Below are positions 8,912 to 34,074 of a stretch of DNA of 64,000 bases, piece by piece. The stretch lies in sequence record MZ475892.1. One strand, given 5' to 3'. The stretch's first letter is position 1, and every line of letters begins with the position of its first letter. A model generated the notes under the pieces. That model saw nothing but the letters and a program-made list of their open reading frames with translations. It had not been told where the DNA came from and did not search any database. The position numbers and the translations under genes were made by a program.

Positions 8912-9939
8912 TGGGAAGAACGTTTGCGTCGGTGACTCGCCACTCACCTGTCGCTCAAATACCTAAGATGGAAATCAAATACGGTAAGAGGCCTATGCTT
9001 CACGTAGTTGATGCATCTAACTGGATGTGTCGTGCTTACTTTGCCACACGCGATAAGCCTGTGTACGCATCAGACGGTACGCCCATCTACGGCCTGCGCC
9101 AGTTTCTGTACATGGTTCAGGACCTGATTGACATAGCAGCCAAAGACCCTAACGGTTGCTACATTGCTTTCTGCTTCGACCCAAGCTCAAACGAAACGTG
9201 GCGTTATCGTGCTCTGCAAAACTGGGCAGCAACCAAGAAGAAGAAATTCATCAGAGGTGTGTTCAAGAAAAGCAGCGACTATAAAGGCAACCGAGACCGC
9301 TCTCAAACAGCCGAGCTTGGTGTGCAGATGATTTTAGCGCGGCAGATTCTTGAACTTGCAGGCTTCTATGTTGGCCTGAAAAAGCCATACGAGTGCGACG
9401 ACCTTGTAGGAACTATCTGCCATAGATTCAAGCGCAAGTATCTGATCAAACTCTACTCACGCGATAAGGACTATGTACAGCTTGTTGATCACAAGAACGT
9501 TGAACTCATTATGCAGGCGCAGTCTAACGCAAAAGAACGCCGCTTCGATTTCAAAACAGCGAAAGGCTTCTTCGGTGTTCCTGCTGACCGTGTTATCGAT
9601 ATGCTCGCGCTGTGCGGTGATGGTGTCGATAACGTTCCAGGCATTCCTGGTATTGGCGAGAAGACTGCTATTGAACATATTCATCGCCACGGTGGTGCTA
9701 TTGAACTTCGTGACGCTCTGCTTAATGGCAAAGTGAAATCGAATGCAGGCTGGGCTAAAGCATTGCGCTCAGAGATTCCTTCGATGGACCTTGAACTCCA
9801 GATGGAGCTTGTCACTATCTGCCGCAACGTGCCGGGCATGCCTCGCACTATTGATGCGTTTGCTAATCGCACGCCTGATGTTAAAGCGCTCAAAGCAGTT
9901 AAGAAGCGTCTGGGCCTGACTAAACTATTACACGTATAG
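8911..9939 (+). CDS. 5'-3' exonuclease / flap endonuclease (PolI N-terminal, T5 D15/T4 RNase H type)
   Basis: VVDASNWMCRAYF, ECDDLVGT, SRDKDYVQL, LCGDGVDNVPGIPGIGEKTA (H3TH). Confidence 0.93.
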   Translation: MGRTFASVTRHSPVAQIPKMEIKYGKRPMLHVVDASNWMCRAYFATRDKPVYASDGTPIYGLRQFLYMVQDLIDIAAKDPNGCYIAFCFDPSSNETWRYRALQNWAATKKKKFIRGVFKKSSDYKGNRDRSQTAELGVQMILARQILELAGFYVGLKKPYECDDLVGTICHRFKRKYLIKLYSRDKDYVQLVDHKNVELIMQAQSNAKERRFDFKTAKGFFGVPADRVIDMLALCGDGVDNVPGIPGIGEKTAIEHIHRHGGAIELRDALLNGKVKSNAGWAKALRSEIPSMDLELQMELVTICRNVPGMPRTIDAFANRTPDVKALKAVKKRLGLTKLLHV

Positions 9940-9946
9940 GAATGAT

Positions 9947-10492
9947 ATGAAACATCCTCAGCGCGTTGCTCATTTAGAGCATTGGTTGGAGGCGGGTCGT
10001 GCCGCTTTCACCATGGGTGTGCGTACACCAAATAAAGATGGCGTGGAGCTGCTTGCTATTTTCCGTGCTGTGTCTCGTGGTACAAAAGACCAGTGCGCTG
10101 CATCAATCAAAAAGCAAACGGCAGAACTGATTGAAGACATTGAACGCGATGTGCCTGCCTTCAAAGTCATTCGTCGTCGCTTCCGCAAAGAGTTTTATCC
10201 AGACTACAACATACCTGCAGAAGTCGAGCTGTATGTTGCGCTTCTGGCAGAGACGTTCGGTGACATTGTGCAGACCATGACGTACCTGCATCTTCGTCGC
10301 TGTGTCGATACTAAGGACCTGTTGCTTAACTGGCTGCCAAATGGGTATCCAGCTAAAGACGCTATGGGTCTCCTGTGGAACTTACAGAAAGTGCCTACCG
10401 AGAACGAGTTCATGTTCACCGGAAATGCGGTAGATTGCATACAATCTGTAAATGACCTATACAACAAAATGTATAAGACAGGAGACAAGTAA
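9947..10492 (+). CDS. hypothetical protein
   Basis: 181 aa, AGGA RBS. Confidence 0.75.
   Translation: MKHPQRVAHLEHWLEAGRAAFTMGVRTPNKDGVELLAIFRAVSRGTKDQCAASIKKQTAELIEDIERDVPAFKVIRRRFRKEFYPDYNIPAEVELYVALLAETFGDIVQTMTYLHLRRCVDTKDLLLNWLPNGYPAKDAMGLLWNLQKVPTENEFMFTGNAVDCIQSVNDLYNKMYKTGDK
10446..10453 (+). promoter_or_regulatory. CTGTAAAT candidate phage promoter
   Basis: About 40 nt before ATG 10492. Confidence 0.6.
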
Positions 10493-11079
10493 TGGATTTA
10501 TCTTCTATCGGCTATGCAAACAAACCATTTCGCGTTATCCCTGTTACTTCTGGTAATATCGTAACTGATTTCATTGCCGGAAAGTTTCAGGTGATTGGCG
10601 TTGAGTGTAATGCTCGTGGCGCGTACGGCTCGCCGATTCAACAAAGCATTGCACGCCGCTTCCCTGACGTGTTGCAGAAGATGAACGCGCTCGACTACGA
10701 CCACCAGAACTTCATGGGCAGCACGTTGATGCATCCTGTGCAGACTCAGCATCGTCGTCGTTTGTTTGTCGCTAACATGTTCCTTGCACGCGGCTTTGGG
10801 TTAGGCCAGAATCGCACTCAAAGTGAAGGTCCGATTAATCGTTTCAGTGAGCGACACTTGACGCAAGCCTTCGACAGTCTTGTTGATAGCTGTGCATCAC
10901 TCAACATTAGTCTGGACCGCCAGATTGCTGTGCAGCGTTTCTACGGCGGTCTTGGTGGGGTATCTTGGGAAGAAGTATGTGAAGTGCTGGACGCTATTTG
11001 CGCCAAGCATAAATTCAACATGCTGGCTTATCTGCCTAAGAACTATAACTCTAACTTTGTGCGGGGTTCTGCGCAATAA
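10492..11079 (+). CDS. macrodomain protein (Poa1p/DarG-like)
   Basis: GNIV...CNARGAYGSPIQQSIARRFP and YGGLGGVSWEEV match the macrodomain GD/N-x-G-x-M-G and G-x-G-x-GG-x-x-W signatures. Confidence 0.7.
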   Translation: MDLSSIGYANKPFRVIPVTSGNIVTDFIAGKFQVIGVECNARGAYGSPIQQSIARRFPDVLQKMNALDYDHQNFMGSTLMHPVQTQHRRRLFVANMFLARGFGLGQNRTQSEGPINRFSERHLTQAFDSLVDSCASLNISLDRQIAVQRFYGGLGGVSWEEVCEVLDAICAKHKFNMLAYLPKNYNSNFVRGSAQ

Positions 11080-11432: not shown

Positions 11433-12155
11433 ATGATTACAGCGAAACACATTGAAAGCCGTTTAAGAACAATAGACTATACCAAGCCTAATCCTGATCG
11501 GGAAATGCTTGTGGCGCTTGTGTCTGATGGACGTTCTCGTATTTTGAAGACAGCACAGATCGATGGTCTGTGTCCGCTGTCTGATAAGTATTTTGAGTTC
11601 TGTCTCAGCCAGGTCGGCTCTTTCTGCACGGCAGGTTACAACGCTGTGGAGATTGCAATGTCTATCGGTGTTCAGCCTATCTATGTCGCAGCGCACATCC
11701 ATCTGCATGGCTGCGATTGGGCACACAGACTTTTAGGCCTGAAACGATTTGCTGCGCTTGCCCGTGGTCCGCACACTGTGTGGTCATCAGGTGAAGCGTG
11801 GTTCGCTTTGGGTGAATGCCAGCGTCGCTCTAAGCTGCACTATGGCACTTCAAGCGGGCAGGAAGCACTGCGCAAAGCAATCCAAAAAGCAGAGATGCCT
11901 TATGTGCTTGCTGCCGCTATCACACATCCCCACCGTCTCATGAGCATTCTCCGTCCGCGTGATGGTCTGTTGTATCGTGACCCACGCATCGAGAAGACGC
12001 TGAAACAACGTGAGAAAGCCGCTGCTGATGCAAAGGCGGAAGGCCGTTCTGTGCTAACGACTGAGAAGCGTAGCGAGTACGGTGACATGGGCAAGTTGTT
12101 TAACGGTCATCTGTCTCGCGCTGATAAGACAGGTAACCCTCGCGTAACTGAATAA
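11433..12155 (+). CDS. hypothetical protein
   Basis: 240 aa in operon context. Confidence 0.7.
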   Translation: MITAKHIESRLRTIDYTKPNPDREMLVALVSDGRSRILKTAQIDGLCPLSDKYFEFCLSQVGSFCTAGYNAVEIAMSIGVQPIYVAAHIHLHGCDWAHRLLGLKRFAALARGPHTVWSSGEAWFALGECQRRSKLHYGTSSGQEALRKAIQKAEMPYVLAAAITHPHRLMSILRPRDGLLYRDPRIEKTLKQREKAAADAKAEGRSVLTTEKRSEYGDMGKLFNGHLSRADKTGNPRVTE

Positions 12156-12166
12156 GGAAACTTATC

Positions 12167-12547
12167 GTGGACAAGAATGAAATCACGCTGTTGATTGATA
12201 GCCTGAACGGAAATCGCAATTTCCCAATCGATCCGGAAGCTGCAATAGGCATGACCCTTGAGCAGTTCATCAAAACCAATGGGAACTTTGTGTTTCTCAT
12301 GAATGATGCTCTCGTCCGTGACATGGTAAGCAAGCAGCATGAGTACGATCCAAACTTCGTACCGGCTACTACTCTCGACGAGATCAACAACGGTCTTATG
12401 GGAACTTTCCACGGTGTCAATGTGTACAGCACTTGGGTGTATCGTGCTCCTGGTGATCTGCCTGCGGACGCGAAGCCTCGTTTCGGTATGTACCGCGCAG
12501 ACCTAAAACAAATCTTCCCGTTGACTAAACATTTCATCGTAAAATAA
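12167..12547 (+). CDS. hypothetical protein
   Basis: 126 aa, AAGGA RBS, GTG start. Confidence 0.7.
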   Translation: MDKNEITLLIDSLNGNRNFPIDPEAAIGMTLEQFIKTNGNFVFLMNDALVRDMVSKQHEYDPNFVPATTLDEINNGLMGTFHGVNVYSTWVYRAPGDLPADAKPRFGMYRADLKQIFPLTKHFIVK

Positions 12548-12558
12548 ACTGTTTACGG

Positions 12559-12564
12559 TAATTT
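12559..12564 (+). promoter_or_regulatory. TAATTT candidate late promoter element
   Basis: Intergenic, about 34 nt before cmoA-like ATG. Confidence 0.5.
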
Positions 12565-12597
12565 CTGAAGGTCAATCAGAATAACGGAATCCTCATC

Positions 12598-13368
12598 ATG
12601 AGCAATATCGATACCACAATGCCTGAAGGCAAATGGGAGTTCAACGAGTCGGTTGCTTGCGTGTTTGATAACATGCTGCAAAACTCCATCCCATCTTATG
12701 GCCGTATGCGTGACCTGACGTACCGTCTGGGTCGTCGCTTCGTAACTCCCGGTTCAGCTATCGTTGATCTCGGTGCTTCACTTGGCCGAGCTATCGAACC
12801 GTTTGCAAAAGAGTTCGGCAAGTATGACTACCATCATGCTGCTGACGCTCCTGGCGAAGACTACGAAACAGGTAATCACTATAGCCTGTATGAAGTAGCT
12901 CCTGCTATGCGTGAACGTCTGGTGCAGAATGAAGTGCTTCTCTCAGTGAATGCCAAACTGGAAAGTGAATCGCTGGTCGATGCAGACAGCTTCCTGTTTG
13001 ATGGCCAAGTGCATTGCTCGTTGATTCTGAGTGTGCTAACTCTCCAGTTCACGCCAATTGAACATCGTCAACACATTCTGGAAAACGTGTACAACTCACT
13101 GCAACCAGGCGGCGCATTCATCCTCGTTGAGAAGGTGTTAGGCGATAACAACTATCTCGACAAAATGCTGGTGGACACCTACTACCAGATGAAAGGCGGT
13201 AACGGTTACAGCGCCGAGTCGATTGCGACTAAACGTAAGTCATTGGAAGGCGTACTCGTTCCTGTTAAAGCAGCGTGGAACGAAGAACTGTTGCGTAAAG
13301 CAGGCTTCGGTCAGGTGGAGAGTTTCTACCGCGACCTGAACTTCGCAGGATGGATTGCTATTAAGTAA
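12598..13368 (+). CDS. cmoA: CmoA-like carboxy-S-adenosylmethionine synthase
   Basis: WEFNESVACVFDNMLQNSIPSY, DLGASLG, TLQF, LVEK, ATKRKSLEGV, NFAGWIAIK parallel CmoA motifs along the whole length. Confidence 0.85.
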   Translation: MSNIDTTMPEGKWEFNESVACVFDNMLQNSIPSYGRMRDLTYRLGRRFVTPGSAIVDLGASLGRAIEPFAKEFGKYDYHHAADAPGEDYETGNHYSLYEVAPAMRERLVQNEVLLSVNAKLESESLVDADSFLFDGQVHCSLILSVLTLQFTPIEHRQHILENVYNSLQPGGAFILVEKVLGDNNYLDKMLVDTYYQMKGGNGYSAESIATKRKSLEGVLVPVKAAWNEELLRKAGFGQVESFYRDLNFAGWIAIK

Positions 13369-13377
13369 GGAAATACT

Positions 13378-14640
13378 ATGAAAGTAAACGGGCGTATCTT
13401 AGCTATCGTCCCACACAAGACAATGCAAGACCGTACCAAGTCTGGTGTGGGTTCGTACATTGATGGGCTAGAGGCATACGGCTTCTGCGACTTTATCACG
13501 GACGGAGAGAACAGCTCCGTTACGAAAAGTCAGTGGTTCACTTACGGTGACACTACTCTCAGTGACGGTTATAAGATAGGGCATATCCAGAGCGAGTTGC
13601 TGATTGCACTTGAGCGCCTCCCATACCGTGCGATTATTTGCAGCACGTATGAGGCGATTGAAGCCTGTGTGTCTCTGGGACTGCCAAAGATTATGCCCGT
13701 TTACTATCGCACGCACAACAGCTTTTTGCTCACACAAGATCTCAAGGGTCTTGGTGCAGAGAAGATCCATCGTGCGTTGTTGCAAGCACGCGTCACAGGG
13801 CTGCGCATACTTGCTAACTGTGATTCGACTGCGATCAATCTTACTGAGCGCTATAAGACGCCAGCACACGTTGCCTACAACTCGTTCTCGGTGCCTGACT
13901 ACAACCCACCAGCTCGGCGTTCTCCGCAACTGTTGATTATCTGTCGCTATGAGAAGGTCAAGCGCACGCTGTTTGCTGCGCGTATTGCTGCTGCATCAGG
14001 ACTACCCGTTCGTGTTATGACAGGCAGTGATCGTCAAGCACGCAATTGGGAGAAAGAGCTGGCTGAGGCGGGCGTCAAAGAGTATACGGTCGTCAGTGGC
14101 CTTAGCGGCAAACAGAAACTCGAATTTATAGGCGCTTGCACCGTAGCCCTTTCTACTGCGAGCGTTGAATCATTTGCTAATGGTGTGCGTGAGTCTATCC
14201 CCTACTGTCCTACCTTTATCGTGCAAACATCCAAGTACGATTGGGCTAAGGACTATACGCGCTTCTGTACCGCCGACAAGCATGTTCATATCAGAACTGT
14301 TGATCGCGTATCGGACCAAGCCGTAGCTGAAATCGGAAGTGAGATAGCGCAAACAGCTACCACTCGTTATCTGACAGGACCTCAGCGTAAGCAGCTACTG
14401 ACTGCTTGGGCAAAGCAAGTTGATCGTGGTTGGTCCGACTTTGTCCAGAAGGCTGTTGTTGACGATGACGGCAAGCCGCTGCGCACCGAGCTGTATCAAG
14501 AACTGATCGACAAGTCAGAGATCGATTGGTCACAAACGCCCACGCTGATGCGTACTGTAAATGCGTTACATAAATGCCACGCTCGTTTGGGCCTGACATT
14601 TGATGGCACTAAAATCAAATATAAGAGGAAGCGCAAATGA
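13378..14640 (+). CDS. GT-B fold glycosyltransferase (GT4-like)
   Basis: 420 aa; ICRYEKVKR and STASVESFANGVRES resemble GT4 nucleotide-sugar-binding motifs. Confidence 0.65.
   Translation: MKVNGRILAIVPHKTMQDRTKSGVGSYIDGLEAYGFCDFITDGENSSVTKSQWFTYGDTTLSDGYKIGHIQSELLIALERLPYRAIICSTYEAIEACVSLGLPKIMPVYYRTHNSFLLTQDLKGLGAEKIHRALLQARVTGLRILANCDSTAINLTERYKTPAHVAYNSFSVPDYNPPARRSPQLLIICRYEKVKRTLFAARIAAASGLPVRVMTGSDRQARNWEKELAEAGVKEYTVVSGLSGKQKLEFIGACTVALSTASVESFANGVRESIPYCPTFIVQTSKYDWAKDYTRFCTADKHVHIRTVDRVSDQAVAEIGSEIAQTATTRYLTGPQRKQLLTAWAKQVDRGWSDFVQKAVVDDDGKPLRTELYQELIDKSEIDWSQTPTLMRTVNALHKCHARLGLTFDGTKIKYKRKRK
14555..14562 (+). promoter_or_regulatory. CTGTAAAT candidate phage promoter
   Basis: About 75 nt before ATG 14637. 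Confidence 0.5.
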
Positions 14641-15713
14641 GTGTTATCGGTGATATTTATAACATCCCACAACCTTTCGCAATGTATGTCGGGAATTGTG
14701 AGACGCGTGCTCAAGCCAAAGTTGCTGCGGGCACAATCGAGTGGGCGCCAGAGAAAGTGTGCTGCACCGTAGATGATGGTAACAACCTGTTCCCTAACGT
14801 ACCTTCAATCAACCCTGCTGACGTGCATAAGACAGATGCAGAAACTTTAGTGATTGGCTGTGCACCTTTCGGCGGCCGCATTGACGAGCACATGGACAAA
14901 GCTATTCGTAGCGCTATCTATCGTGGACGCAACATCGCTGCTGCTATGCATACGCGCCTGGCGGATAATCCTGAATACGTTGAGCTGGCTGATCGCTACA
15001 ACGTCAAGCTGTATGACTTCCGCCATCGTCCTGATGCGTACCCACTCGGTACTGGTGAGAAGCGTAGCGGTCTGCGTCTGTTAACTGTCGGTACTGATAG
15101 CTCATGCGGTAAGAAGTTTACCACGCTGTCTCTGTATCGTGAACTCAAAGCTATTCATGAAGCCACTACGTTCTGCTCTACTGGCCAGACGGGTTTCTTG
15201 ATTAGCGGTTGCGGTATCAACAACGACACGATTGTTGCCGACTTCCTTGCTGGTGCCGCTGAATCACTTTCGCCTGATGGTCCTGCTGATCATGTTTATC
15301 TGATTGAGGGTCAAGGCGCTATCACGCACCCAGCATACACAGGCGGCAGTATGAGTCTGATTGCTGGCTCGCAGCCTGATCATCTCATCCTGTGTCACGC
15401 ATGGAACCGTCAGAATCAGTTGGGCGTTAAGCGTAAGCCTGACCTTGATTTCGAGATGCGTGCTAACATTGAAGCGGCACGTATTCACGGTCTCAACCCG
15501 ACTTACATCGGTATCAGCATTAACTTCTCTGAGTGCGACCTCACCGCCGATGAGCAAGATAAAATCCTATACCAACTCGCATCAACGTATGAGATTCCCG
15601 TGTTCGACCCATCACAGGACACTTCTGTGTTGCGCGATCTCGCTCGTATGTTAGCAACTAAAGCCAAAGCAAGGAGCCTCGATGGCCAAGCATCAACTGC
15701 GCAAGCTGTTTGA
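14637..15713 (+). CDS. DUF1611 family P-loop protein (DgcN-like)
   Basis: LLTVGTDSSCGKKFTT, STGQTG, DFLAGAAE, IEGQGAITHPAY, GSQPDHLILCH. Confidence 0.88.
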   Translation: MSVIGDIYNIPQPFAMYVGNCETRAQAKVAAGTIEWAPEKVCCTVDDGNNLFPNVPSINPADVHKTDAETLVIGCAPFGGRIDEHMDKAIRSAIYRGRNIAAAMHTRLADNPEYVELADRYNVKLYDFRHRPDAYPLGTGEKRSGLRLLTVGTDSSCGKKFTTLSLYRELKAIHEATTFCSTGQTGFLISGCGINNDTIVADFLAGAAESLSPDGPADHVYLIEGQGAITHPAYTGGSMSLIAGSQPDHLILCHAWNRQNQLGVKRKPDLDFEMRANIEAARIHGLNPTYIGISINFSECDLTADEQDKILYQLASTYEIPVFDPSQDTSVLRDLARMLATKAKARSLDGQASTAQAV

Positions 15714-16557
15714 ACAGCATGTGAAAAAAGAAGTGAAAGCAGACAAGGTAGCTGTGCTGCTTTCATCTGGCCTCGATGGTTTGGTCAGTGCGTTAGCTGC
15801 ACACGACCTAGGCAAGAAGGTACATGCCTTCACATTCCAAATGGGTGACAACCCTAGCTTTGACAGTCGCCACGCACAGATCGTTGCACAGAAGATGGGA
15901 TGGGAGTTCACTCTCGTTAAAGTTCCCACCAGCGTGTCTGCTATCGCGTTAGCGTGGCGCGTGCTACACTCCAAGTATCGCTGCATCAAGAAGCGTGACT
16001 ATGAATGTGCGTACCCTATGGTCTATTGCTACAAGGCAATCAAAGACGCTGGGTATAAGTATGTGTTAAGCGGGCTGGTGGCCGATGGCTACTTCCTGTA
16101 TAACCGTAACACGCACATTCAGAAAATCAGCGGCCCGCACTCTGACGCTCAGAAGTATCATGAGTTCCGTACTCAATACTTTAGTCCGTGGCTTAAACAC
16201 GGTAAGAAGTCTCTGGGCGTTGACGGGTACAACCCGAGCGGTATGTTGCAGCATGAAATGTTGTGCGATAACTTCGGCCTGATTCACGTTAACCCGTGGA
16301 TGCAGAACAAGGTGTTTGACTACTTCATCAAATACACTTGGCAGGAGCTGAATCAGCCTAAGCAGAAGATGCCACTAACCGAAGCGTGGGCAGAACACAT
16401 TGCTCTTGTTGGTCATCGCCCACACAGGGGCTATCAGACAGAAGCCAAAGTGCCTGAATACTTTGAGCATCTGATCGATAACCCTGAGATTAACTTTAAC
16501 GGGCGCAAGCGCATCATGGACGTGGCACGCGACTGGTCCAAACGAGAGCCTGAATAA
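15682..16557 (+). CDS. asparagine-synthetase-like PP-loop ATP-dependent ligase lacking a glutaminase domain
   Basis: AVLLSSGLDG (SGGLDS variant), LSGLVADGYF, NPWMQNKV; 291 aa, no N-terminal Cys1 domain. Confidence 0.8.
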   Translation: MAKHQLRKLFEQHVKKEVKADKVAVLLSSGLDGLVSALAAHDLGKKVHAFTFQMGDNPSFDSRHAQIVAQKMGWEFTLVKVPTSVSAIALAWRVLHSKYRCIKKRDYECAYPMVYCYKAIKDAGYKYVLSGLVADGYFLYNRNTHIQKISGPHSDAQKYHEFRTQYFSPWLKHGKKSLGVDGYNPSGMLQHEMLCDNFGLIHVNPWMQNKVFDYFIKYTWQELNQPKQKMPLTEAWAEHIALVGHRPHRGYQTEAKVPEYFEHLIDNPEINFNGRKRIMDVARDWSKREPE

Positions 16558-16812
16558 ATGCATCCTGTTATCACAGACTTTCTTGGTCCTATCGTTAAGC
16601 GGCTGGGCTTATTCACTGCTATATTCGGTTTTGTCGGCGTGCTGCTGTCTGTGATCGCAGTGCTTGTGTGCCGCCCAGAAGTCCTTCAATACGAATACGA
16701 TACTGTAAATAGACTTCGTACTGAGGGTATTGTATTCTTGGGTAAAGGCGTTCTTGTTTACATCGTAGGCGAGATACTTGAAGGCACGTTCAAGTGGAGA
16801 AAAGATGATTAA
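16558..16812 (+). CDS. small membrane protein
   Basis: 84 aa with two hydrophobic stretches. Confidence 0.6.
   Translation: MHPVITDFLGPIVKRLGLFTAIFGFVGVLLSVIAVLVCRPEVLQYEYDTVNRLRTEGIVFLGKGVLVYIVGEILEGTFKWRKDD
16703..16710 (+). promoter_or_regulatory. CTGTAAAT candidate phage promoter
   Basis: About 95 nt before ATG 16805. Confidence 0.45.
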
Positions 16813-17068
16813 CAAATTCGTGATGAAGAAGACTCCGACCATTGAAGCCTGTCAGTGGAATGGAGAGAACAAGGAAGAGATTGAAGCCTTCCTTGGCGAT
16901 AGCGGATTCGTTGTTGGGCGTTACGTGCAGATTGGTGTTCTGGATAAATACCAGAAGCCAACTATTGCTAACGTAAGCGTAGGCAACTATGTGATCAAGC
17001 GCGATGATGGTAAGTTCTATGCCATTACTGCGCAAGATCTGTTTGAGAATTATGTATTAGCAGATTGA
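16805..17068 (+). CDS. conserved phage hypothetical protein
   Basis: IEACQWNGEN...VGNYVIKRDDGKFY pattern common in phage small proteins; GGAG RBS. Confidence 0.7.
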   Translation: MINKFVMKKTPTIEACQWNGENKEEIEAFLGDSGFVVGRYVQIGVLDKYQKPTIANVSVGNYVIKRDDGKFYAITAQDLFENYVLAD

Positions 17069-17075
17069 GGCCATA

Positions 17076-17528
17076 ATGAATCTGTTTTCTATTTTAAAAC
17101 AGCAAGTGAAGAAATCCCTGACGACCGAAGCAACGCTTGAGCCAGAAGTGCGCAAACACTTTGATTGGCGTTTCAGTGTTGACGTCAAAGGTCTGATGTA
17201 CATTGTAGGCAAGACGGGCGCTAACACCTGCTTCTATCTTGAGCCAGGTCACGTTGAGCCTACTGCCTGCTATCCTGATGAACTGCTTGCGAAGATTGAT
17301 CAGTGGGGCGCTGCTAAGTATGTGTCCTACGCTGTCTACTTCAAGAAGTTCAGTAGCCCTGTAGCTGAAAACATCAAGACGCTTGAGCAAGCCAAGACAG
17401 GCAAGCCTAAAGCGTTTAAGAAAGGCTACTTTATCTGTGGCGTAACACCGAAAGGTAAGCGCGTCAAACTGTGTCGTCTGCACAACAGCCTAAGCGGTAT
17501 GCAGTGGGTTGATGTAGACCAGAAGTAA
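17076..17528 (+). CDS. hypothetical protein
   Basis: 150 aa, GAGG RBS. Confidence 0.75.
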   Translation: MNLFSILKQQVKKSLTTEATLEPEVRKHFDWRFSVDVKGLMYIVGKTGANTCFYLEPGHVEPTACYPDELLAKIDQWGAAKYVSYAVYFKKFSSPVAENIKTLEQAKTGKPKAFKKGYFICGVTPKGKRVKLCRLHNSLSGMQWVDVDQK

Positions 17529-19184: not shown

Positions 19185-19586
19185 ATGAGACCTGAAAACA
19201 TTTCACGCACCTATCGCGTCGGTCAGTCTGACCTGGAGAAAGCACACAACGTCTGCGGAGAGAACAATGTAACACTCTCAGATGTGGTACGCAGATACAT
19301 CGAAAGAATCGTACTGACTGAGGGTGAGTTCCTTATGAGCGAGCGTAAGCACGTACCTGAGTCTCAACTGAATGTACGCCTGCCCTTTTACATTGCGCAC
19401 TCCTTTGCATCTGTGTGTAAGTCTCGTGATACGTTAGCCTCTAAAACCATTCTCAACTTTGTCAGGAATATTGCTCTTTCAGGTACTATCCCTGAGGAGT
19501 TAAAGTACGCCTCAGACACAGAGTTGCGTGCCTATATTACCTCCGAGCGCTCCCGCCTCGATGCACTGGAAGCAAAACTTAAATGA
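19185..19586 (+). CDS. tandem ribbon-helix-helix DNA-binding protein
   Basis: SRTYRV...TLSDVVRRYIERI and QLNVRLP...ASKTILNFVRNI. Confidence 0.55.
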   Translation: MRPENISRTYRVGQSDLEKAHNVCGENNVTLSDVVRRYIERIVLTEGEFLMSERKHVPESQLNVRLPFYIAHSFASVCKSRDTLASKTILNFVRNIALSGTIPEELKYASDTELRAYITSERSRLDALEAKLK

Positions 19587-20422
19587 TTCTAACTAGCCCC
19601 ATTCGCTATCAGGGCAACAAGCGCACTCTGATGCCTCTTATTCTTGAACATGCGCCTGTGAAGGATTGCGTTCGCATGATAGACGCATTCGGCGGTAGCG
19701 GTACTGTTGCGCTCAACATGCCTCACAAGTTTCGCATCTACAATGAATTGAGCACGCCTGTGTTTGAGATCGTCCAGTTGCTTGCGCATCAAGATCCGAA
19801 GAAAACGTTGGGTCAGATCAAGCGTATCGTCAAGCGTTTTTGTCTAACCAATAGCAGCCAAGACAACTACGACATGTTCCGCGCGTATGTGCAGAAGAAG
19901 CCTAGCCCTCTTCACCATTACATCGCACACAGGCATGCACGCTCTAACATGCTGCGCTTCAACCAGAAAGGCATCTACAACGTGCCGTTCGGCGAGCGGG
20001 GACTGATTGGCAAGTTCGATCAGCTCGAACAGGAGCTGGTGCAGTTCCACGAGCGTATGCAGAACACGCACATCACCAACATGCGCTACAACATGTTGCT
20101 CAAGTCTGTGTCAAAGCATATCGGACCTAACACGTTCATTTACTTTGACCCTCCGTATCTTGCTAGCGGTGCGATGCAATACGGTAAGTGGACTGAGCAC
20201 AACGAACGCAACCTGCTGTCCGTACTTGAGTATCTGAATCGTCAAGGCTGCCCGTGGATGTTGAGCAACGTTCTCCAACATCGGCATCACACGAACGACC
20301 TGCTCAAACGCTGGCTAAAGAAACACGCAACGACTGTCATCTATCCTGACAAGTCTTATTCAATGGCCAACTCTCATTCCGATAGTCACAGCACTATCGA
20401 GATCCTGGCAATGAACTACTGA
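19583..20422 (+). CDS. dam: DNA adenine methyltransferase (Dam/D12 class)
   Basis: PIRYQGNK, DAFGGSG, FNQKGIYNVPFG, YFDPPY. Confidence 0.92.
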   Translation: MILTSPIRYQGNKRTLMPLILEHAPVKDCVRMIDAFGGSGTVALNMPHKFRIYNELSTPVFEIVQLLAHQDPKKTLGQIKRIVKRFCLTNSSQDNYDMFRAYVQKKPSPLHHYIAHRHARSNMLRFNQKGIYNVPFGERGLIGKFDQLEQELVQFHERMQNTHITNMRYNMLLKSVSKHIGPNTFIYFDPPYLASGAMQYGKWTEHNERNLLSVLEYLNRQGCPWMLSNVLQHRHHTNDLLKRWLKKHATTVIYPDKSYSMANSHSDSHSTIEILAMNY

Positions 20423-23335: not shown

Positions 23336-23720
23336 TCAGTTACGTGATCAATTGACCGAAGCTGAATACGCAGAACTTGAGCGCACGACAGCACGGTCAA
23401 TCATGGAACAAGTGTGGGCACTACGCGGCTGGACGGTTAAGCTCGACTGGTGCAACTATATGTGCGACGACGTTGATTGGTTATTCCATGGTAATGAACG
23501 TAAAGCACCGGTTGATCACGCTATGCCGAATTCTGGTGTTGGCACTAGCATTGAGCAGCATCGCCTTAATGTCGTGTTTACTCCTACTGAGGTTAGCGTT
23601 ACGAACTCACTGGTAGACAGCCCTGTCACGGGCACTGGTATGTCACTGCGCTGTGCTTACTGCGCGTGGCTTTTAGCAATCGAAAAACAAAAGGCTGCCA
23701 ATGCGCTGCAATCTGACTGA
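23322..23720 (+). CDS. hypothetical protein
   Basis: 132 aa, start uncertain. Confidence 0.6.
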   Translation: MSSVNQLRDQLTEAEYAELERTTARSIMEQVWALRGWTVKLDWCNYMCDDVDWLFHGNERKAPVDHAMPNSGVGTSIEQHRLNVVFTPTEVSVTNSLVDSPVTGTGMSLRCAYCAWLLAIEKQKAANALQSD

Positions 23721-24216
23721 ACTGCCTATCAAACTCGATCAGGCTGAAAACATTATGGGCAGCGTGTTTGCGCTTGCTGCTGGCTCTAAGTCCAAACGCC
23801 GTGCTACTGCTGCAATGCTCATCCATTTCCATGAAGGCTACCCTACGATCATCAGTAGTGGTGTCAATGGTACTGTGCCTGGTGAAAGCAACGTGTGTGA
23901 GAATGAAGACCTCACTCTGACGTTTGCTCACGTCACCCACGCAGAAGCTAACTGCCTCAATCGCATGGACGAATACAGTCTGTGGCCAGAAGAAGAGGAC
24001 ATCCTGTTTTGTACTGACAGCCCCTGTCCTGATTGTTTGCAGCAACTCGAATCTGCTGGTGTGCAGACCATCGTTTATGCGCGTGAATACAGACTCACAG
24101 AGCACCTGGATAAGTCTGCTATTCGCATGTATTGTCTCGATATTGAGAACGTGAGGGCGTCTTTGCTGAAATCTGTAAATCGTATAGACGAAGTGATTGC
24201 AACCACACCTACTTAA
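23701..24216 (+). CDS. dCMP deaminase
   Basis: SSGVNGT, HAEAN, TDSPCPDC Zn-binding motifs, IVYAREYR. Confidence 0.92.
   Translation: MRCNLTELPIKLDQAENIMGSVFALAAGSKSKRRATAAMLIHFHEGYPTIISSGVNGTVPGESNVCENEDLTLTFAHVTHAEANCLNRMDEYSLWPEEEDILFCTDSPCPDCLQQLESAGVQTIVYAREYRLTEHLDKSAIRMYCLDIENVRASLLKSVNRIDEVIATTPT
24173..24180 (+). promoter_or_regulatory. CTGTAAAT candidate phage promoter
   Basis: About 55 nt before ATG 24234. Confidence 0.55.
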
Positions 24217-28138: not shown

Positions 28139-29239
28139 ATGACAGGTCCTCTCGATCTCACTAACCCACAGCACTTCGAACTGTACTCGCTGCACAGCGT
28201 TGATGCACAGTATATCAATCTGTGTGACGCACTCCTCACTCAGGGTACGCACGAATCTGACCCAGAGCGCACTACTGATACGTGGCATACGCTGATCGGT
28301 ATTGGCTTCCAGTTGTCTAACACCAACATCGCTTTCCCTGCGCTGCTGTCTAAGCGTGTCAACGTCCGTGCAGCTATCGATGAATCATGCTGGTTCGCAC
28401 GCGGTGAAACGAACATCGCAACTCTCGGTTCTAAAATCTGGAACGAGTGGGCAGACGAAGAAGGTGAGAACGGTCCTATCTACGGCTTCCAGTATCGAAA
28501 CTGGCCTGACATTAAAGTGTTCAACACTGTCGAAGGTATGATTGAGCAGCACATCCCACCAGCAATGATTGAGCGCATCTCGAAAGAGATCAACCGCATG
28601 AAGGCGCAGGGCTATATCGAAACTGCGTTGCCTGATGGTCGCGTGCTGTATGAAGGCTATATCGATCAGTACGCTGATGCACTACGTCAAATCATGGCGC
28701 GTAGTCGTAGCCGCCGCATTCGTGTGCAAGCGTTCAACCCTGGTTACGTTGGTATGCAGAGCCTGCCTCCGTGTCACACTGAGTTTGAGTTCAACGTGAC
28801 CAAAGCTACTGCGTATGAAATTGCGCAGATGGAAGCACGCTCAATGCGCCCTGACGCTGACTCACTGCATATCGTGGTGACCATGCGCTCAAACGACGCG
28901 CTCTTGGGCAGGCCATTCAACATCGTTGGCTACAGCGCCATGCACCAGTTGTTTGCGAAGTGGGCGGGTCTGAACGTTGGTTCGTTTACTCTGAATGTGA
29001 CCAATATGCACATGTACGATCACCACCGCGAAGCGTATGCACAACAGCGTGAGCAGTGGCTGGAACTACAGACGCAGATGCAGACGACAGGCAAACCTGT
29101 TGTTTACCCTACCCTCGAAATCACTGACGACATTCTGGGCCTGACGCCAGAAGAGCTGCTGGATAACGTCAACGTCGATTGGTTCGAGCTGGTGGACTAC
29201 TCTCCTAAACCTGCTGTTAAAGGACGCGTAACCAAATGA
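28139..29239 (+). CDS. thyA: thymidylate synthase
   Basis: GPIYGFQYRNW, SRR, LPPCH, MRSNDALLGRPFN (Asn, dUMP-type), HMYDHH. Confidence 0.93.
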   Translation: MTGPLDLTNPQHFELYSLHSVDAQYINLCDALLTQGTHESDPERTTDTWHTLIGIGFQLSNTNIAFPALLSKRVNVRAAIDESCWFARGETNIATLGSKIWNEWADEEGENGPIYGFQYRNWPDIKVFNTVEGMIEQHIPPAMIERISKEINRMKAQGYIETALPDGRVLYEGYIDQYADALRQIMARSRSRRIRVQAFNPGYVGMQSLPPCHTEFEFNVTKATAYEIAQMEARSMRPDADSLHIVVTMRSNDALLGRPFNIVGYSAMHQLFAKWAGLNVGSFTLNVTNMHMYDHHREAYAQQREQWLELQTQMQTTGKPVVYPTLEITDDILGLTPEELLDNVNVDWFELVDYSPKPAVKGRVTK

Positions 29240-31238: not shown

Positions 31239-31937
31239 ATGGCAAAAATTGCTAAAGCAAAGGAAGGGAAAAAGAAAAGCAACCCTATGTTGATTGACCT
31301 GAAAAAGTTCAAGTCAGTTAAACAGCTTAAGGGTGCGAAGTACAACCCTCGTTTCATTACAGACAGCCGACTGAGAGCGCTCGAAGGTTCTTTGGGCAGC
31401 TTCGGTGATTTGTCTGGCGTGGTGTTCAACAACAGCGTAGACAGTGGCGTATTGATCTCAGGCCACCAGCGTCTCAAGTCGATTGAGAAGTGGGACTCGC
31501 GCATTGAGATTCAACAAACGTCTGACAAGTACGGCACGGTAGCGTTGGGTTATATCCATGCTACCAGCGCCAAAGGTAAAACGATCAGCATCCCACTGCG
31601 TATCGTTAACTGGTCAGATAAGAAAGTGGAGTTTGCTGCTAACATTGCTGCGAATGCCCACGGCGGTGAGTTCGATAACAAAAAGCTCGCGTCTCTTGTT
31701 GAGAAGCTGGACCTGACTACAATCAAGCCAGCTCTTATCGGGCTTGACCCGTTAGAGATTCGCGGCCTGCAACAGACGCTGAGCAAACAAGCTATCGTCG
31801 AGCAGGAAAAGCGTGTTGGTAAAACAACAGGCAAAATGAACGGCAGTACTGGCGAGTTCAAAGAGTACACGACTGATGAAGTTGGTACTGCGCTGACCTG
31901 CACCTGCCCACGTTGTGGCTTTAAGTTCGAGGGATAA
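31239..31937 (+). CDS. ParB/Srx-like nuclease domain protein with C-terminal Zn ribbon
   Basis: YNPRFI...GSFG...LISGHQRL; CPRCG at C-terminus. Confidence 0.8.
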   Translation: MAKIAKAKEGKKKSNPMLIDLKKFKSVKQLKGAKYNPRFITDSRLRALEGSLGSFGDLSGVVFNNSVDSGVLISGHQRLKSIEKWDSRIEIQQTSDKYGTVALGYIHATSAKGKTISIPLRIVNWSDKKVEFAANIAANAHGGEFDNKKLASLVEKLDLTTIKPALIGLDPLEIRGLQQTLSKQAIVEQEKRVGKTTGKMNGSTGEFKEYTTDEVGTALTCTCPRCGFKFEG

Positions 31938-31938
31938 C

Positions 31939-34074
31939 ATGATCATCAAGCCGCCTACAATGAAAGAGATTAATAAGCTGCCCAAGCCTTGGTCAGGTAT
32001 GAGTTTCTTTGCAGGTTGCGGTGGTTCATCTACCGGTCACAAGATGGCCGGTATTAACATCCTACTGAGCAACGAGTTCGTGGACGCGGCTCGTGAATCG
32101 TATGAAGCGAACCATCCAACAACCAAAGTGTTGCCCCACGATATTCGTCGTCTTGACCCGAAAAAGCTGCTTAGCTATTGCGGCCTGAGTCAGGGCGAAC
32201 TGGACTTGCTCGACGGCAGTCCTCCGTGCTTCACCGAAGACACGTTCATTCATACCGACACTGGTATGAAGTTCATCACTGATATGCGCATCGGTGACTT
32301 CGCTATGACCTCTGTTGGTAAGTATCATCCAGTGTATGACACGATGGTACGTCCGTATGACGGTCAGATGCACAGAATTGAAACGCTGCTTGGTCAGAAC
32401 AATGCAACGCCTGAACATCCGTTCTTTGTTCGTCGTCAGAATGAAGAAACTGGCGGGTACAGTGAGCCGTTCTGGTGTGACGCTAAAGATGTGCAGGAAG
32501 GTGACCTGTTAGGTACGCCTCGTGTTACGCCTGATATGGGCGAAGCACACACGCATGAGATTATCTCGTCGTTGACTGCGCAGCTTGTGCGTTGGATTGC
32601 ATTGCCTGAGTTCTGGTGGCTGATTGGTCACTGGTGCAATCGCGGTGCAATCGATAAGATTCGTGGTGTCGATGTTATTCAATTCACCTCGATGACAGCG
32701 ATGGAAAACTCGCTGGTGGAACAAGCGTTCGACGTGCTCAAGTTAAGCAGCATCAACAGCGCTTCGTCCGACATGGGCGTTCATCGTAAGACCGTTCGTG
32801 TTGTTATGGACACAGACCTGTTGCTGTTCTTGCGTATGTTTATCGCGCAGGGCAAGAAGTCTATGTCCCGCCGTCTGCCTGGCATGATCTTCCATCTGGC
32901 TAAAGAGCTGAAACAGCAATTCATTCTCGGCTATCTGGGTCGTGATTACGTCACAGCAATGGGCGTTGGTCATGCGTTAGAGGCTGACTCAAAGCGCTTC
33001 CTAGTTGAGATGAATTACCTGTGCTGCTCTGCGTTCAACAGACCGCTGTTCGATGCAATGTTGTTCACTGACTTGCATTACGGTAGTCCGATGTTACCAC
33101 CGAGTCGCTTCATTACCAAAGAGCACATCGGCTTCCTGTTCTTGCAAGAAGAGGTTAATTTCTTCTTTGAGTTCGAGCCGGAAGACCCGCATCTGTGGGT
33201 TGAAGTGATTGAGAACTTTACGCATCATGAAACGTGCAACGTCTATAACTTCTCAGTCAGTGTTGATGAGACGTATGTTGCTAACGGCATGGTCGTGCAT
33301 AACTGCAAAGGGTTCTCGACTGCTGGCGTGAAAGAAGACGGCTGGGGCAAAGAGGTTAAGTACAGCGGCAACAAGTATCAGCAAGTCGATGACCTGTTCG
33401 ATCAGTATTGCCGTATGCTCAAGCACATGCAGCCTAAAACGTTCACTGCGGAAAACGTTAGTGGCCTCGTTAAAGGTGCGTCGAAGGGTTACTTCATTGA
33501 AATCATGAAGACCTTTGATCAGCTGGGCTACTATGTGCGAGCGCCGTTGCTTAATGCTGCGTGGCTTGGTGTGCCTCAGTCTCGTGAGCGTATCATCTTT
33601 ATGGGTGTGCGCAAAGACGTGGCGAAAGCACTCGGCTATAAAACTGCGTTGACTGCTGTGCCTGATGTAACACCTCAATCAAGCATGGCGTTCCTTGCAG
33701 ATGCATTGCCGAACATTCGTCGTTATAAAGGTACGGAGCGTGACATTATCAAGTATCTGCCTGCTGTTAACGGCCCGATGCCTACGATTACCGCTGCTGA
33801 TGCTATCGCATACGAAACAGCACGCTTCTCCTCTGCTGGCTTCATTGAAGACGACAAAGGGCACAGACGCAAGCTGACGATTGACGAACTCAAAGTTGTG
33901 TCAGGCATGCCTAGTGATTACGTGCTCACAGGTAAGTTTGAAGAACAATGGGAACGTCTCGGTCGTGTGTGCGTACCTGCAATGACGTGTGCTGCGGCAA
34001 GCGCGTTGATACGCCATGTGCTTGAGCCTTACGCGAAGCTGCGTAAAAAGAAACCTGGGGATCGTTTTCGTTAA
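31939..34074 (+). CDS. C5-cytosine methyltransferase family enzyme with intein; probable carboxymethyltransferase
   Basis: FFAGCGG (I), DIRRL, GSPP|C (IV), ENVSG (VI), QSRER (VIII), RKLTIDE (IX), ERLGRVCVP (X with Arg for Asn); GAGGGA RBS. Confidence 0.9.
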   Translation: MIIKPPTMKEINKLPKPWSGMSFFAGCGGSSTGHKMAGINILLSNEFVDAARESYEANHPTTKVLPHDIRRLDPKKLLSYCGLSQGELDLLDGSPPCFTEDTFIHTDTGMKFITDMRIGDFAMTSVGKYHPVYDTMVRPYDGQMHRIETLLGQNNATPEHPFFVRRQNEETGGYSEPFWCDAKDVQEGDLLGTPRVTPDMGEAHTHEIISSLTAQLVRWIALPEFWWLIGHWCNRGAIDKIRGVDVIQFTSMTAMENSLVEQAFDVLKLSSINSASSDMGVHRKTVRVVMDTDLLLFLRMFIAQGKKSMSRRLPGMIFHLAKELKQQFILGYLGRDYVTAMGVGHALEADSKRFLVEMNYLCCSAFNRPLFDAMLFTDLHYGSPMLPPSRFITKEHIGFLFLQEEVNFFFEFEPEDPHLWVEVIENFTHHETCNVYNFSVSVDETYVANGMVVHNCKGFSTAGVKEDGWGKEVKYSGNKYQQVDDLFDQYCRMLKHMQPKTFTAENVSGLVKGASKGYFIEIMKTFDQLGYYVRAPLLNAAWLGVPQSRERIIFMGVRKDVAKALGYKTALTAVPDVTPQSSMAFLADALPNIRRYKGTERDIIKYLPAVNGPMPTITAADAIAYETARFSSAGFIEDDKGHRRKLTIDELKVVSGMPSDYVLTGKFEEQWERLGRVCVPAMTCAAASALIRHVLEPYAKLRKKKPGDRFR
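32227..33303 (+). mobile_element. intein (359 aa) with degenerate LAGLIDADG region
   Basis: CFTEDT start, ATPEHPF block B, VVHN end, Cys +1 is the catalytic Cys; LIGHWCNRG and FILGYLGRD remnants. Confidence 0.92.

Follow-up and report, generated by a model that had tools for sequence, protein, structure and literature searches.

What a stand-alone relative of asparagine synthetase does in the genome of a large phage is the question raised by a 64,000-nucleotide stretch of Erwinia phage pEa_SNUABM_34 (MZ475892.1), hereafter the window, in which one open reading frame (ORF) encodes a 291-amino-acid protein resembling the synthetase domain of AsnB. pEa_SNUABM_34 is a 264 kb jumbo phage, and the region around the gene, compared over window bases 12000-17000, is matched by 8 sister Snuvirus genomes at 96-99% identity. 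We consider it probable that the product of this gene is an amide ligase that depends on ATP and belongs to the CmoA/CmoX/CmoY pathway of DNA hypermodification. We infer this activity from homology, the predicted fold, the family-conserved residues of the ATP site, and the presence of three pathway genes in the window. The ligase gene and its signals are as follows.

15682..16557, + strand: target ligase ORF, 291 amino acids, ATG start; a stand-alone AsnB-type synthetase domain of the CmoY family, in a clade paired with DgcN-like proteins
15671..15676, + strand: Shine-Dalgarno sequence AAGGAG, 5 nt ahead of the ligase ATG, read directly
15763..15780, + strand: codons of the PP-loop, S28-S-G-L-D-G33, corresponding to SGGLDS at AsnB residues 234-239

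The Pfam family Asn_synthase matched the ligase with an E-value of 9.9e-14, covering only profile positions 1-132 of 354. The protein begins 27 amino acids before the PP-loop and contains no N-terminal nucleophile (Ntn) glutaminase domain with its Cys1, and the preceding gene, which overlaps the ligase ORF by 32 nt, encodes an unrelated DUF1611 protein, not a glutaminase. The preliminary description of this DNA, made from the sequence alone, had reported an AsnB-like protein starting close to the PP-loop and lacking the Ntn/Cys1 domain, and the Pfam match and the short N-terminal segment confirmed it. Models of true asparagine synthetases scored far below their cut-offs (TIGR01536, 58.8 vs 267.1 bits; PRK09431, 31.4 vs 499 bits). 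The QueC model TIGR00364 gave 23.2 bits against a cut-off of 150, with similarity confined to the PP-loop region, and the Pfam matches to QueC (PF06508, 21.4 vs 22 bits) and NAD_synthase were both sub-threshold.

An AlphaFold2 model of the ligase, built from an 18-sequence alignment, reached a predicted local distance difference test (pLDDT) score of 94.8. When it was compared with the PDB by Foldseek, the best matches were the synthetase domains of E. coli AsnB, human asparagine synthetase (ASNS), beta-lactam synthetase and carbapenam synthetase, with E-values of about 1e-10 to 1e-8 and query-based template modelling scores (TMq) of 0.65-0.69, while the other PP-loop enzymes TtuA, LarE and NadE ranked far lower. 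Comparison with the orthologue of Dickeya phage AD1 gave nonsynonymous (pN) and synonymous (pS) divergences of 0.09 and 0.72, so that the gene is under strong purifying selection. Fold confidence, structural matches and pN/pS together show, far beyond chance, that the ligase is a genuine, well-conserved gene.

In a 155-sequence alignment of the family, S28, G30 and D32 were essentially invariant, and the residues common to the target family and AsnB were S28/G30/D32, D61, G131, D135, R163, P205, K229 and Q252. At position 33, 98% of the other family members have Ser, and in the target's clade the residue is Gly (about half), Ser or Ala. The deviation of SSGLDG from SGGLDS, already pointed out in the preliminary description, is thus real and a trait of the clade in this alignment. 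The PP-loop and the equivalents of D279, G347, D351, R375 and K429 are held in common with AsnB/ASNS and with the beta-lactam and carbapenam synthetases, a group of enzymes that share one reaction logic, in which a carboxylate is adenylated and then attacked by an amine. The target differs from AsnB, with about 20% identity, by the absence of the Ntn glutaminase domain, by a C-terminal portion of the synthetase domain that is about 60-100 amino acids shorter, by a Leu in place of Glu348, and by its proposed substrate, which would be a DNA base and not aspartate. In the segment corresponding to Lys449 of AsnB (the RxK motif) no confident alignment was obtained; a clade-conserved R246-x-H248-R249 lies there.

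The closest characterized enzyme comes from Synechococcus phage S-B43, whose pathway was published in December 2025 (Yang et al., Nat Commun 2025, PMC12783734). In that phage CmoA produces carboxy-S-adenosylmethionine (carboxy-SAM), and CmoX, which is homologous to C5-methyltransferases and carries an SPPC motif as well as Arg350 where Asn is usual, carboxymethylates cytosine to 5-carboxymethylcytosine (5cxmC). SpCmoY, a stand-alone asparagine-synthetase homologue, then ligates glycine to 5cxmC in DNA in an ATP-dependent reaction, an activity demonstrated in E. coli, in vitro and in virion DNA (PMC12783734). Full-length homology was found between our ligase and SpCmoY (UniProt A0A514ABJ0), with 33% identity over 275 amino acids (E 2e-50), and the SpCmoY gene of S-B43 was the nearest phage match to the ligase beyond the Erwinia and Dickeya phages. 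Both proteins are stand-alone AsnB-type synthetase domains of about 270-290 amino acids with the same family-conserved residues, both genes are accompanied by a CmoA and an Arg-bearing CmoX, and the two fall within one family by profile search and by tree. They differ in the PP-loop, which is SGGVDS in SpCmoY.

Searching 1.84 billion representatives with a profile returned 1396 relatives of the ligase (517 with E <1e-10), nearly all of them stand-alone proteins of 260-300 amino acids. Four metagenomic relatives (P0111, P0115, P0117 and P0157) are natural fusions in which a CmoY-like ligase domain is joined to a C5 DNA methylase domain, with either of the two coming first. Compact arrangements running from CmoX and CmoA to the ligase were seen across metagenomic contigs, including L016 and L017, which carry ligases from outside the target's clade; in L008, L014 and L015 the order is CmoX-CmoA-DgcN-like-ligase. 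The fusions and the compact contigs lend independent support to a role in DNA modification.

The other two pathway genes could be located in the window as follows.

12598..13368, + strand: CmoA-like carboxy-SAM synthase, 256 amino acids; PHROG 4752 (2.9e-78), with CmoA models as the top NCBIfam matches
31915..34074, + strand: precursor of a CmoX-type cytosine-C5 carboxymethyltransferase, 719 amino acids, split by an intein
32227..33303, + strand: intein in CmoX, amino acids 105-463 (GSPP/CFTED...VVHN/CKGFS), immediately before the catalytic Cys of SPPC

The CmoA-like gene sits 2.3 kb upstream of the ligase in the same gene array. Its product matched the NCBIfam CmoA model TIGR00740 with E 1.5e-39 and 136 bits against an equivalog cut-off of 193, and it is 28% identical to the biochemically verified SpCmoA (E 4e-22). 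In the CmoX precursor, the first 104 residues show 55% identity to SpCmoX residues 22-98, while the last 256 residues align with SpCmoX residues 98-369, so that Arg684 aligns with Arg350 of SpCmoX; the ENV and QSRER motifs were also found. Comparison of the two extein pieces as the predicted spliced product agreed with this piecewise alignment. The intein of 359 amino acids, from C105 to H462-N463 and followed by Cys464 at position +1, was called from Intein_splicing, Hint_2 and intein_Cterm (17.2 bits vs a cut-off of 15.6). Since it lies between GSPP and CKGFS, the SPPC catalytic motif exists only once the protein has been spliced. The CmoX homologues of pEa_SNUABM_5, Yoloswag and Yersinia phage fHe-Yen9-02 likewise match SpCmoX in two pieces over about 2 kb, and they probably carry an intein as well, judging from these alignments. 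The 420-amino-acid protein encoded next to the CmoA-like gene (13378-14640) was considered as the missing CmoX and rejected, because it showed no similarity to SpCmoX and had a GT-B fold instead.

In order to place the target among its relatives, a tree of the ligases was built with FastTree using Shimodaira-Hasegawa (SH)-like supports and rooted on the synthetase domain of E. coli AsnB; its deep branches were poorly resolved. About 24 representatives, the target among them, form a clade (support 99) that stands apart from the SpCmoY clade and also apart from the clade with the second ligase type of other Erwinia phages (pEa_SNUABM_5, Y3). E. coli AsnB forms a very long outgroup branch. The clade is marked by 11 signature positions and by insertions at amino acids 150-153 and 169-183, the longer of which is the following.

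16186..16230, + strand: clade-specific insertion, amino acids 169-183, PWLKHGKKSLGVDGY, absent from SpCmoY, the other clades and AsnB

This insertion is followed by Leu189, at a position where SpCmoY has an Arg and AsnB has R387. The kind of enzyme represented by CmoY is already published; what is new here is the DgcN-paired clade with its glycosyltransferase and racemase accessories, and the intein-split CmoX.

The DgcN-like partner gene and a glycosyltransferase-like gene lie upstream of the ligase in the window.

14637..15713, + strand: DgcN-like/DUF1611 protein, 358 amino acids, Pfam DUF1611_N and DUF1611; the invariant partner of the ligase clade
13378..14640, + strand: GT-B fold glycosyltransferase-like protein, 420 amino acids, an accessory member of the cluster

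DgcN proper is a D-glutamate N-acetyltransferase (EC 2.3.1.312; PMC11747546). The phage protein resembles it (PDB 7xrj, E 4e-53) in having both DUF1611 domains and in matching the NCBIfam DgcN model NF041892 over its full length (E 2.2e-86), and it differs in being phage-encoded and in adjoining a DNA-modifying ligase, not the DgcA racemase. Of 50,697 phage records, exactly 34, from Erwinia and Dickeya phages, encode the DUF1611 protein, and these are exactly the records with a target-clade ligase (at least 80% identity); none of the 21 records with ligases of other clades encodes it. The target-clade contexts that were read came from AD1, pEa_SNUABM_3 and the metagenomic contigs L006/7, L008/9, L010/11, L013, L014 and L015. 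In all 34 isolate records and in all 6 distinct metagenomic contexts the DUF1611 gene is upstream of the ligase in the same cluster, either adjacent or with only a racemase-like gene between, and overlap of the two genes is frequent. No DgcN-like gene was present in the 4 contexts of other clades (S-B43, pEa_SNUABM_5, L016, L017). In the literature searched, DUF1611 occurs solely in a gene table for phage AD1, and searches on DgcN and on the resistance of these phages to restriction yielded little. PMC12783734, which was searched for DUF1611, glycosyltransferases, inteins and Erwinia, mentions none of these.

In pEa_SNUABM_3-type phages, L008 and L010, the DgcN-like gene and the ligase gene are separated by a gene for an alanine/serine-racemase-like protein.

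L004:4563-5498 (pEa_SNUABM_3 gp019), L008:7055-8032 and L010:7099-8001: racemase-like genes, 300-325 amino acids

The glycosyltransferase-like protein, at 405-420 amino acids, is present in the window and in 21 Erwinia phage records, and AD1/Alexandra-type phages are natural variants that lack it. The 420-amino-acid protein had no match in Pfam or NCBIfam, nor in a sequence search of the PDB; one of its homologues carries PF00534, and its AlphaFold2 model (pLDDT 83) matched GT4/GT-B enzymes by Foldseek with E about 1e-9 and TM-scores of about 0.55. In one metagenomic jumbo-phage lineage, the ligase is followed at a distance of a few genes by a 302-amino-acid GNAT acetyltransferase (L006:9192-10100, L007:9526-10434), which may likewise serve in decoration. 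In L010, the gene immediately after the ligase (8943-9419) encodes a 158-amino-acid protein with a weak match to GmrSD_N, a type IV restriction-like domain. Relative to the SpCmoY system, the target system has a distal, intein-containing CmoX and a DgcN-like gene that is always present, and here also a GT-B glycosyltransferase.

In the mechanism that we propose, phage CmoA would make carboxy-SAM, and the intein-spliced CmoX would move its carboxymethyl group onto cytosine C5 in phage DNA to give 5cxmC. The ligase would bind ATP through its PP-loop and, acting on duplex phage DNA, adenylate the carboxylate of 5cxmC; attack of an amine on the acyl-adenylate would then form an amide of 5cxmC. The DgcN-like and glycosyltransferase-like proteins might decorate this adduct, or the DgcN-like protein might take part in the acyl transfer itself; this last step is speculative. 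Since the clade is always accompanied by a partner resembling a D-amino-acid acyltransferase, it probably makes a more elaborate DNA decoration. We speculate that what the ligase appends is an amino acid, which may have the D configuration, and not simply glycine, because a DgcN-like protein always, and racemase-like and GT-B proteins often, accompany the clade; also as speculation, the adduct probably undergoes further processing in pEa_SNUABM_34, by N-acylation and/or glycosylation. In its most specific form, in which the DgcN-paired clade puts a D-amino acid on 5cxmC, supplied by the host or, where there is one, by the phage racemase, and to be N-acylated and/or glycosylated in this phage, the proposal is possible, if less likely than not, and is offered tentatively.

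Several observations count against this picture. The PP-loop SSGLDG departs from the consensus, and Glu348 of AsnB, in the SGEGSDE motif, aligns with Leu132 in the SGLVADG of the ligase; that position is a non-acidic Ile in the active SpCmoY too, and Glu is not conserved there across the family alignment. CmoX is encoded 16 kb from the ligase and needs splicing for activity. The DgcN-like protein scored 289.8 bits, well under the equivalog cut-off of 480, which leaves its chemistry uncertain. The racemase-like gene is absent from the 64-kb window, so the D-amino-acid idea would rely here on host pools of D-Ala or D-Glu. The residues of the glycine pocket, sought in the text and supplements of PMC12783734, are given in figure images only, and use of glycine stays compatible with the data.

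Glycine is the amine of the least improbable alternative, in which the target is a plain SpCmoY orthologue making 5-glycylcarboxymethylcytosine, and the DgcN-like protein, glycosyltransferase and racemase act later or on something else. SpCmoY is the nearest characterized relative and has the family-conserved core in common with the target, and the largest ligase cluster and several smaller ones retain the residues that bind the glycine carboxylate (PMC12783734). The same study held that several clusters probably use different amines. The target's separate and well-supported clade, its two insertions, the Leu at position 189 in place of Arg, and the strict linkage to a DgcN-like gene, not seen in the SpCmoY clade, make it rather unlikely that the target is a glycine ligase of this kind. 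Ammonia, which would yield 5-carbamoylmethylcytosine, is a very improbable choice of amine. AsnB synthetase domains are able to use free NH3, and the target could be an NH3-dependent amidotransferase that lost its glutaminase domain. Ammonia has indeed been proposed as the amine for a glutaminase-bearing cluster (PMC12783734), but the nearest characterized stand-alone member takes glycine, and racemase, DgcN-like and glycosyltransferase neighbours are ill-suited to a simple carboxamide.

The division of labour between the two paired proteins might also differ from our proposal, such that the AsnB-like protein only adenylates 5cxmC and the DgcN-like partner transfers the cytosin-5-yl-acetyl group to a D-amino acid. 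The obligate pairing, the frequent gene overlap, the fact that DgcN itself N-acylates a D-amino acid (EC 2.3.1.312; PMC11747546), and the docking surface that the clade-specific insertions could supply are all in keeping with such a two-component ligation. Enzymes of the AsnB superfamily, SpCmoY included, nevertheless run both half-reactions in one active site, DgcN uses acetyl-CoA and not an acyl-adenylate, and an interaction between the ligase and the DgcN-like protein is hypothetical, and we regard this scheme as decidedly unlikely. We give hardly any credence to a substrate other than DNA, that is, to an asparagine synthetase or an enzyme amidating a small molecule, nucleotide or tRNA in QueC/NadE-like auxiliary metabolism. 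GenBank labels the gene 'putative asparagine synthase', and the weak QueC and NadE matches might be cited for such a role, but these matches and the TIGR01536 score stay under their cut-offs, E. coli AsnB is set apart in the tree by a very long branch as the outgroup, relatives are fused to DNA C5-methylases, and the gene occurs in a cluster with CmoA and CmoX. An amide ligase acting on carboxymethylcytosine in DNA with an external amine, as the preliminary description had suggested in preference to an asparagine-making enzyme, is favoured by the homology to SpCmoY, by the CmoA and Arg-bearing CmoX, and by the methylase fusions; the missing glutaminase, the TIGR01536 score and the Leu for Glu348 likewise speak against an asparagine synthetase.

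The genes around the ligase are all on the + strand and tightly packed. A scan of 12000-17200 for promoters and terminators gave nothing exceeding shuffled expectation, and the operon structure is therefore supported solely by gene packing and overlaps. An 84-amino-acid hydrophobic, probably membrane, protein without family matches is encoded at 16558-16812, beginning at the first base past the ligase stop codon. Upstream of the cluster, at 10492-11079, is a gene for a macro-domain-like protein (PHROG 335, 'phosphatase'), conserved regardless of ligase type and labelled O-acetyl-ADP-ribose deacetylase or Appr-1-p processing in AD1 and pEa_SNUABM_5. Elsewhere in the window are a Dam-type N6-adenine methyltransferase (19583-20422), a dCMP deaminase (23701-24216), and a thymidylate-synthase homologue with insertions (28139-29239), which has 366 amino acids against a 264-position profile and falls under the cut-off of 2 of 3 equivalog models. 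These three genes indicate that the phage holds more capacity for nucleotide and DNA modification beyond the 5cxmC pathway. A literature search found no published account of modified DNA in these phages.

Other base hypermodifications of phages, such as glycosylation of 5-hydroxymethylcytosine (5hmC) or 5-hydroxymethyluracil (5hmU), amination and amino-acid adducts, follow the same logic, in which a handle is installed and then decorated with an amino acid or a sugar, and such pathways have restriction evasion as their common purpose. In contrast to these pathways, what is installed here is a carboxylate handle, linked via an amide and added after replication from carboxy-SAM. CmoY-type ligases convert this cytosine carboxymethyl handle to amides, and the glycine enzyme alone has been characterized so far. 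The DgcN-paired clade offers a further such system, found in culturable jumbo phages of Erwinia and Dickeya, and its module of 4-5 genes (CmoA, glycosyltransferase, DgcN-like protein, optional racemase and ligase) predicts a chemically richer modification. Naming the modification would widen the known chemistry of DNA bases. It would also help to show how phages that are under consideration for the biocontrol of fire blight evade restriction, and new enzymes for functionalizing DNA at chosen sites could follow. If the D-amino-acid proposal is true, it would represent a cytosine hypermodification of the peptide or glyco-amino-acid type, and the first DNA base to contain a D-amino acid.

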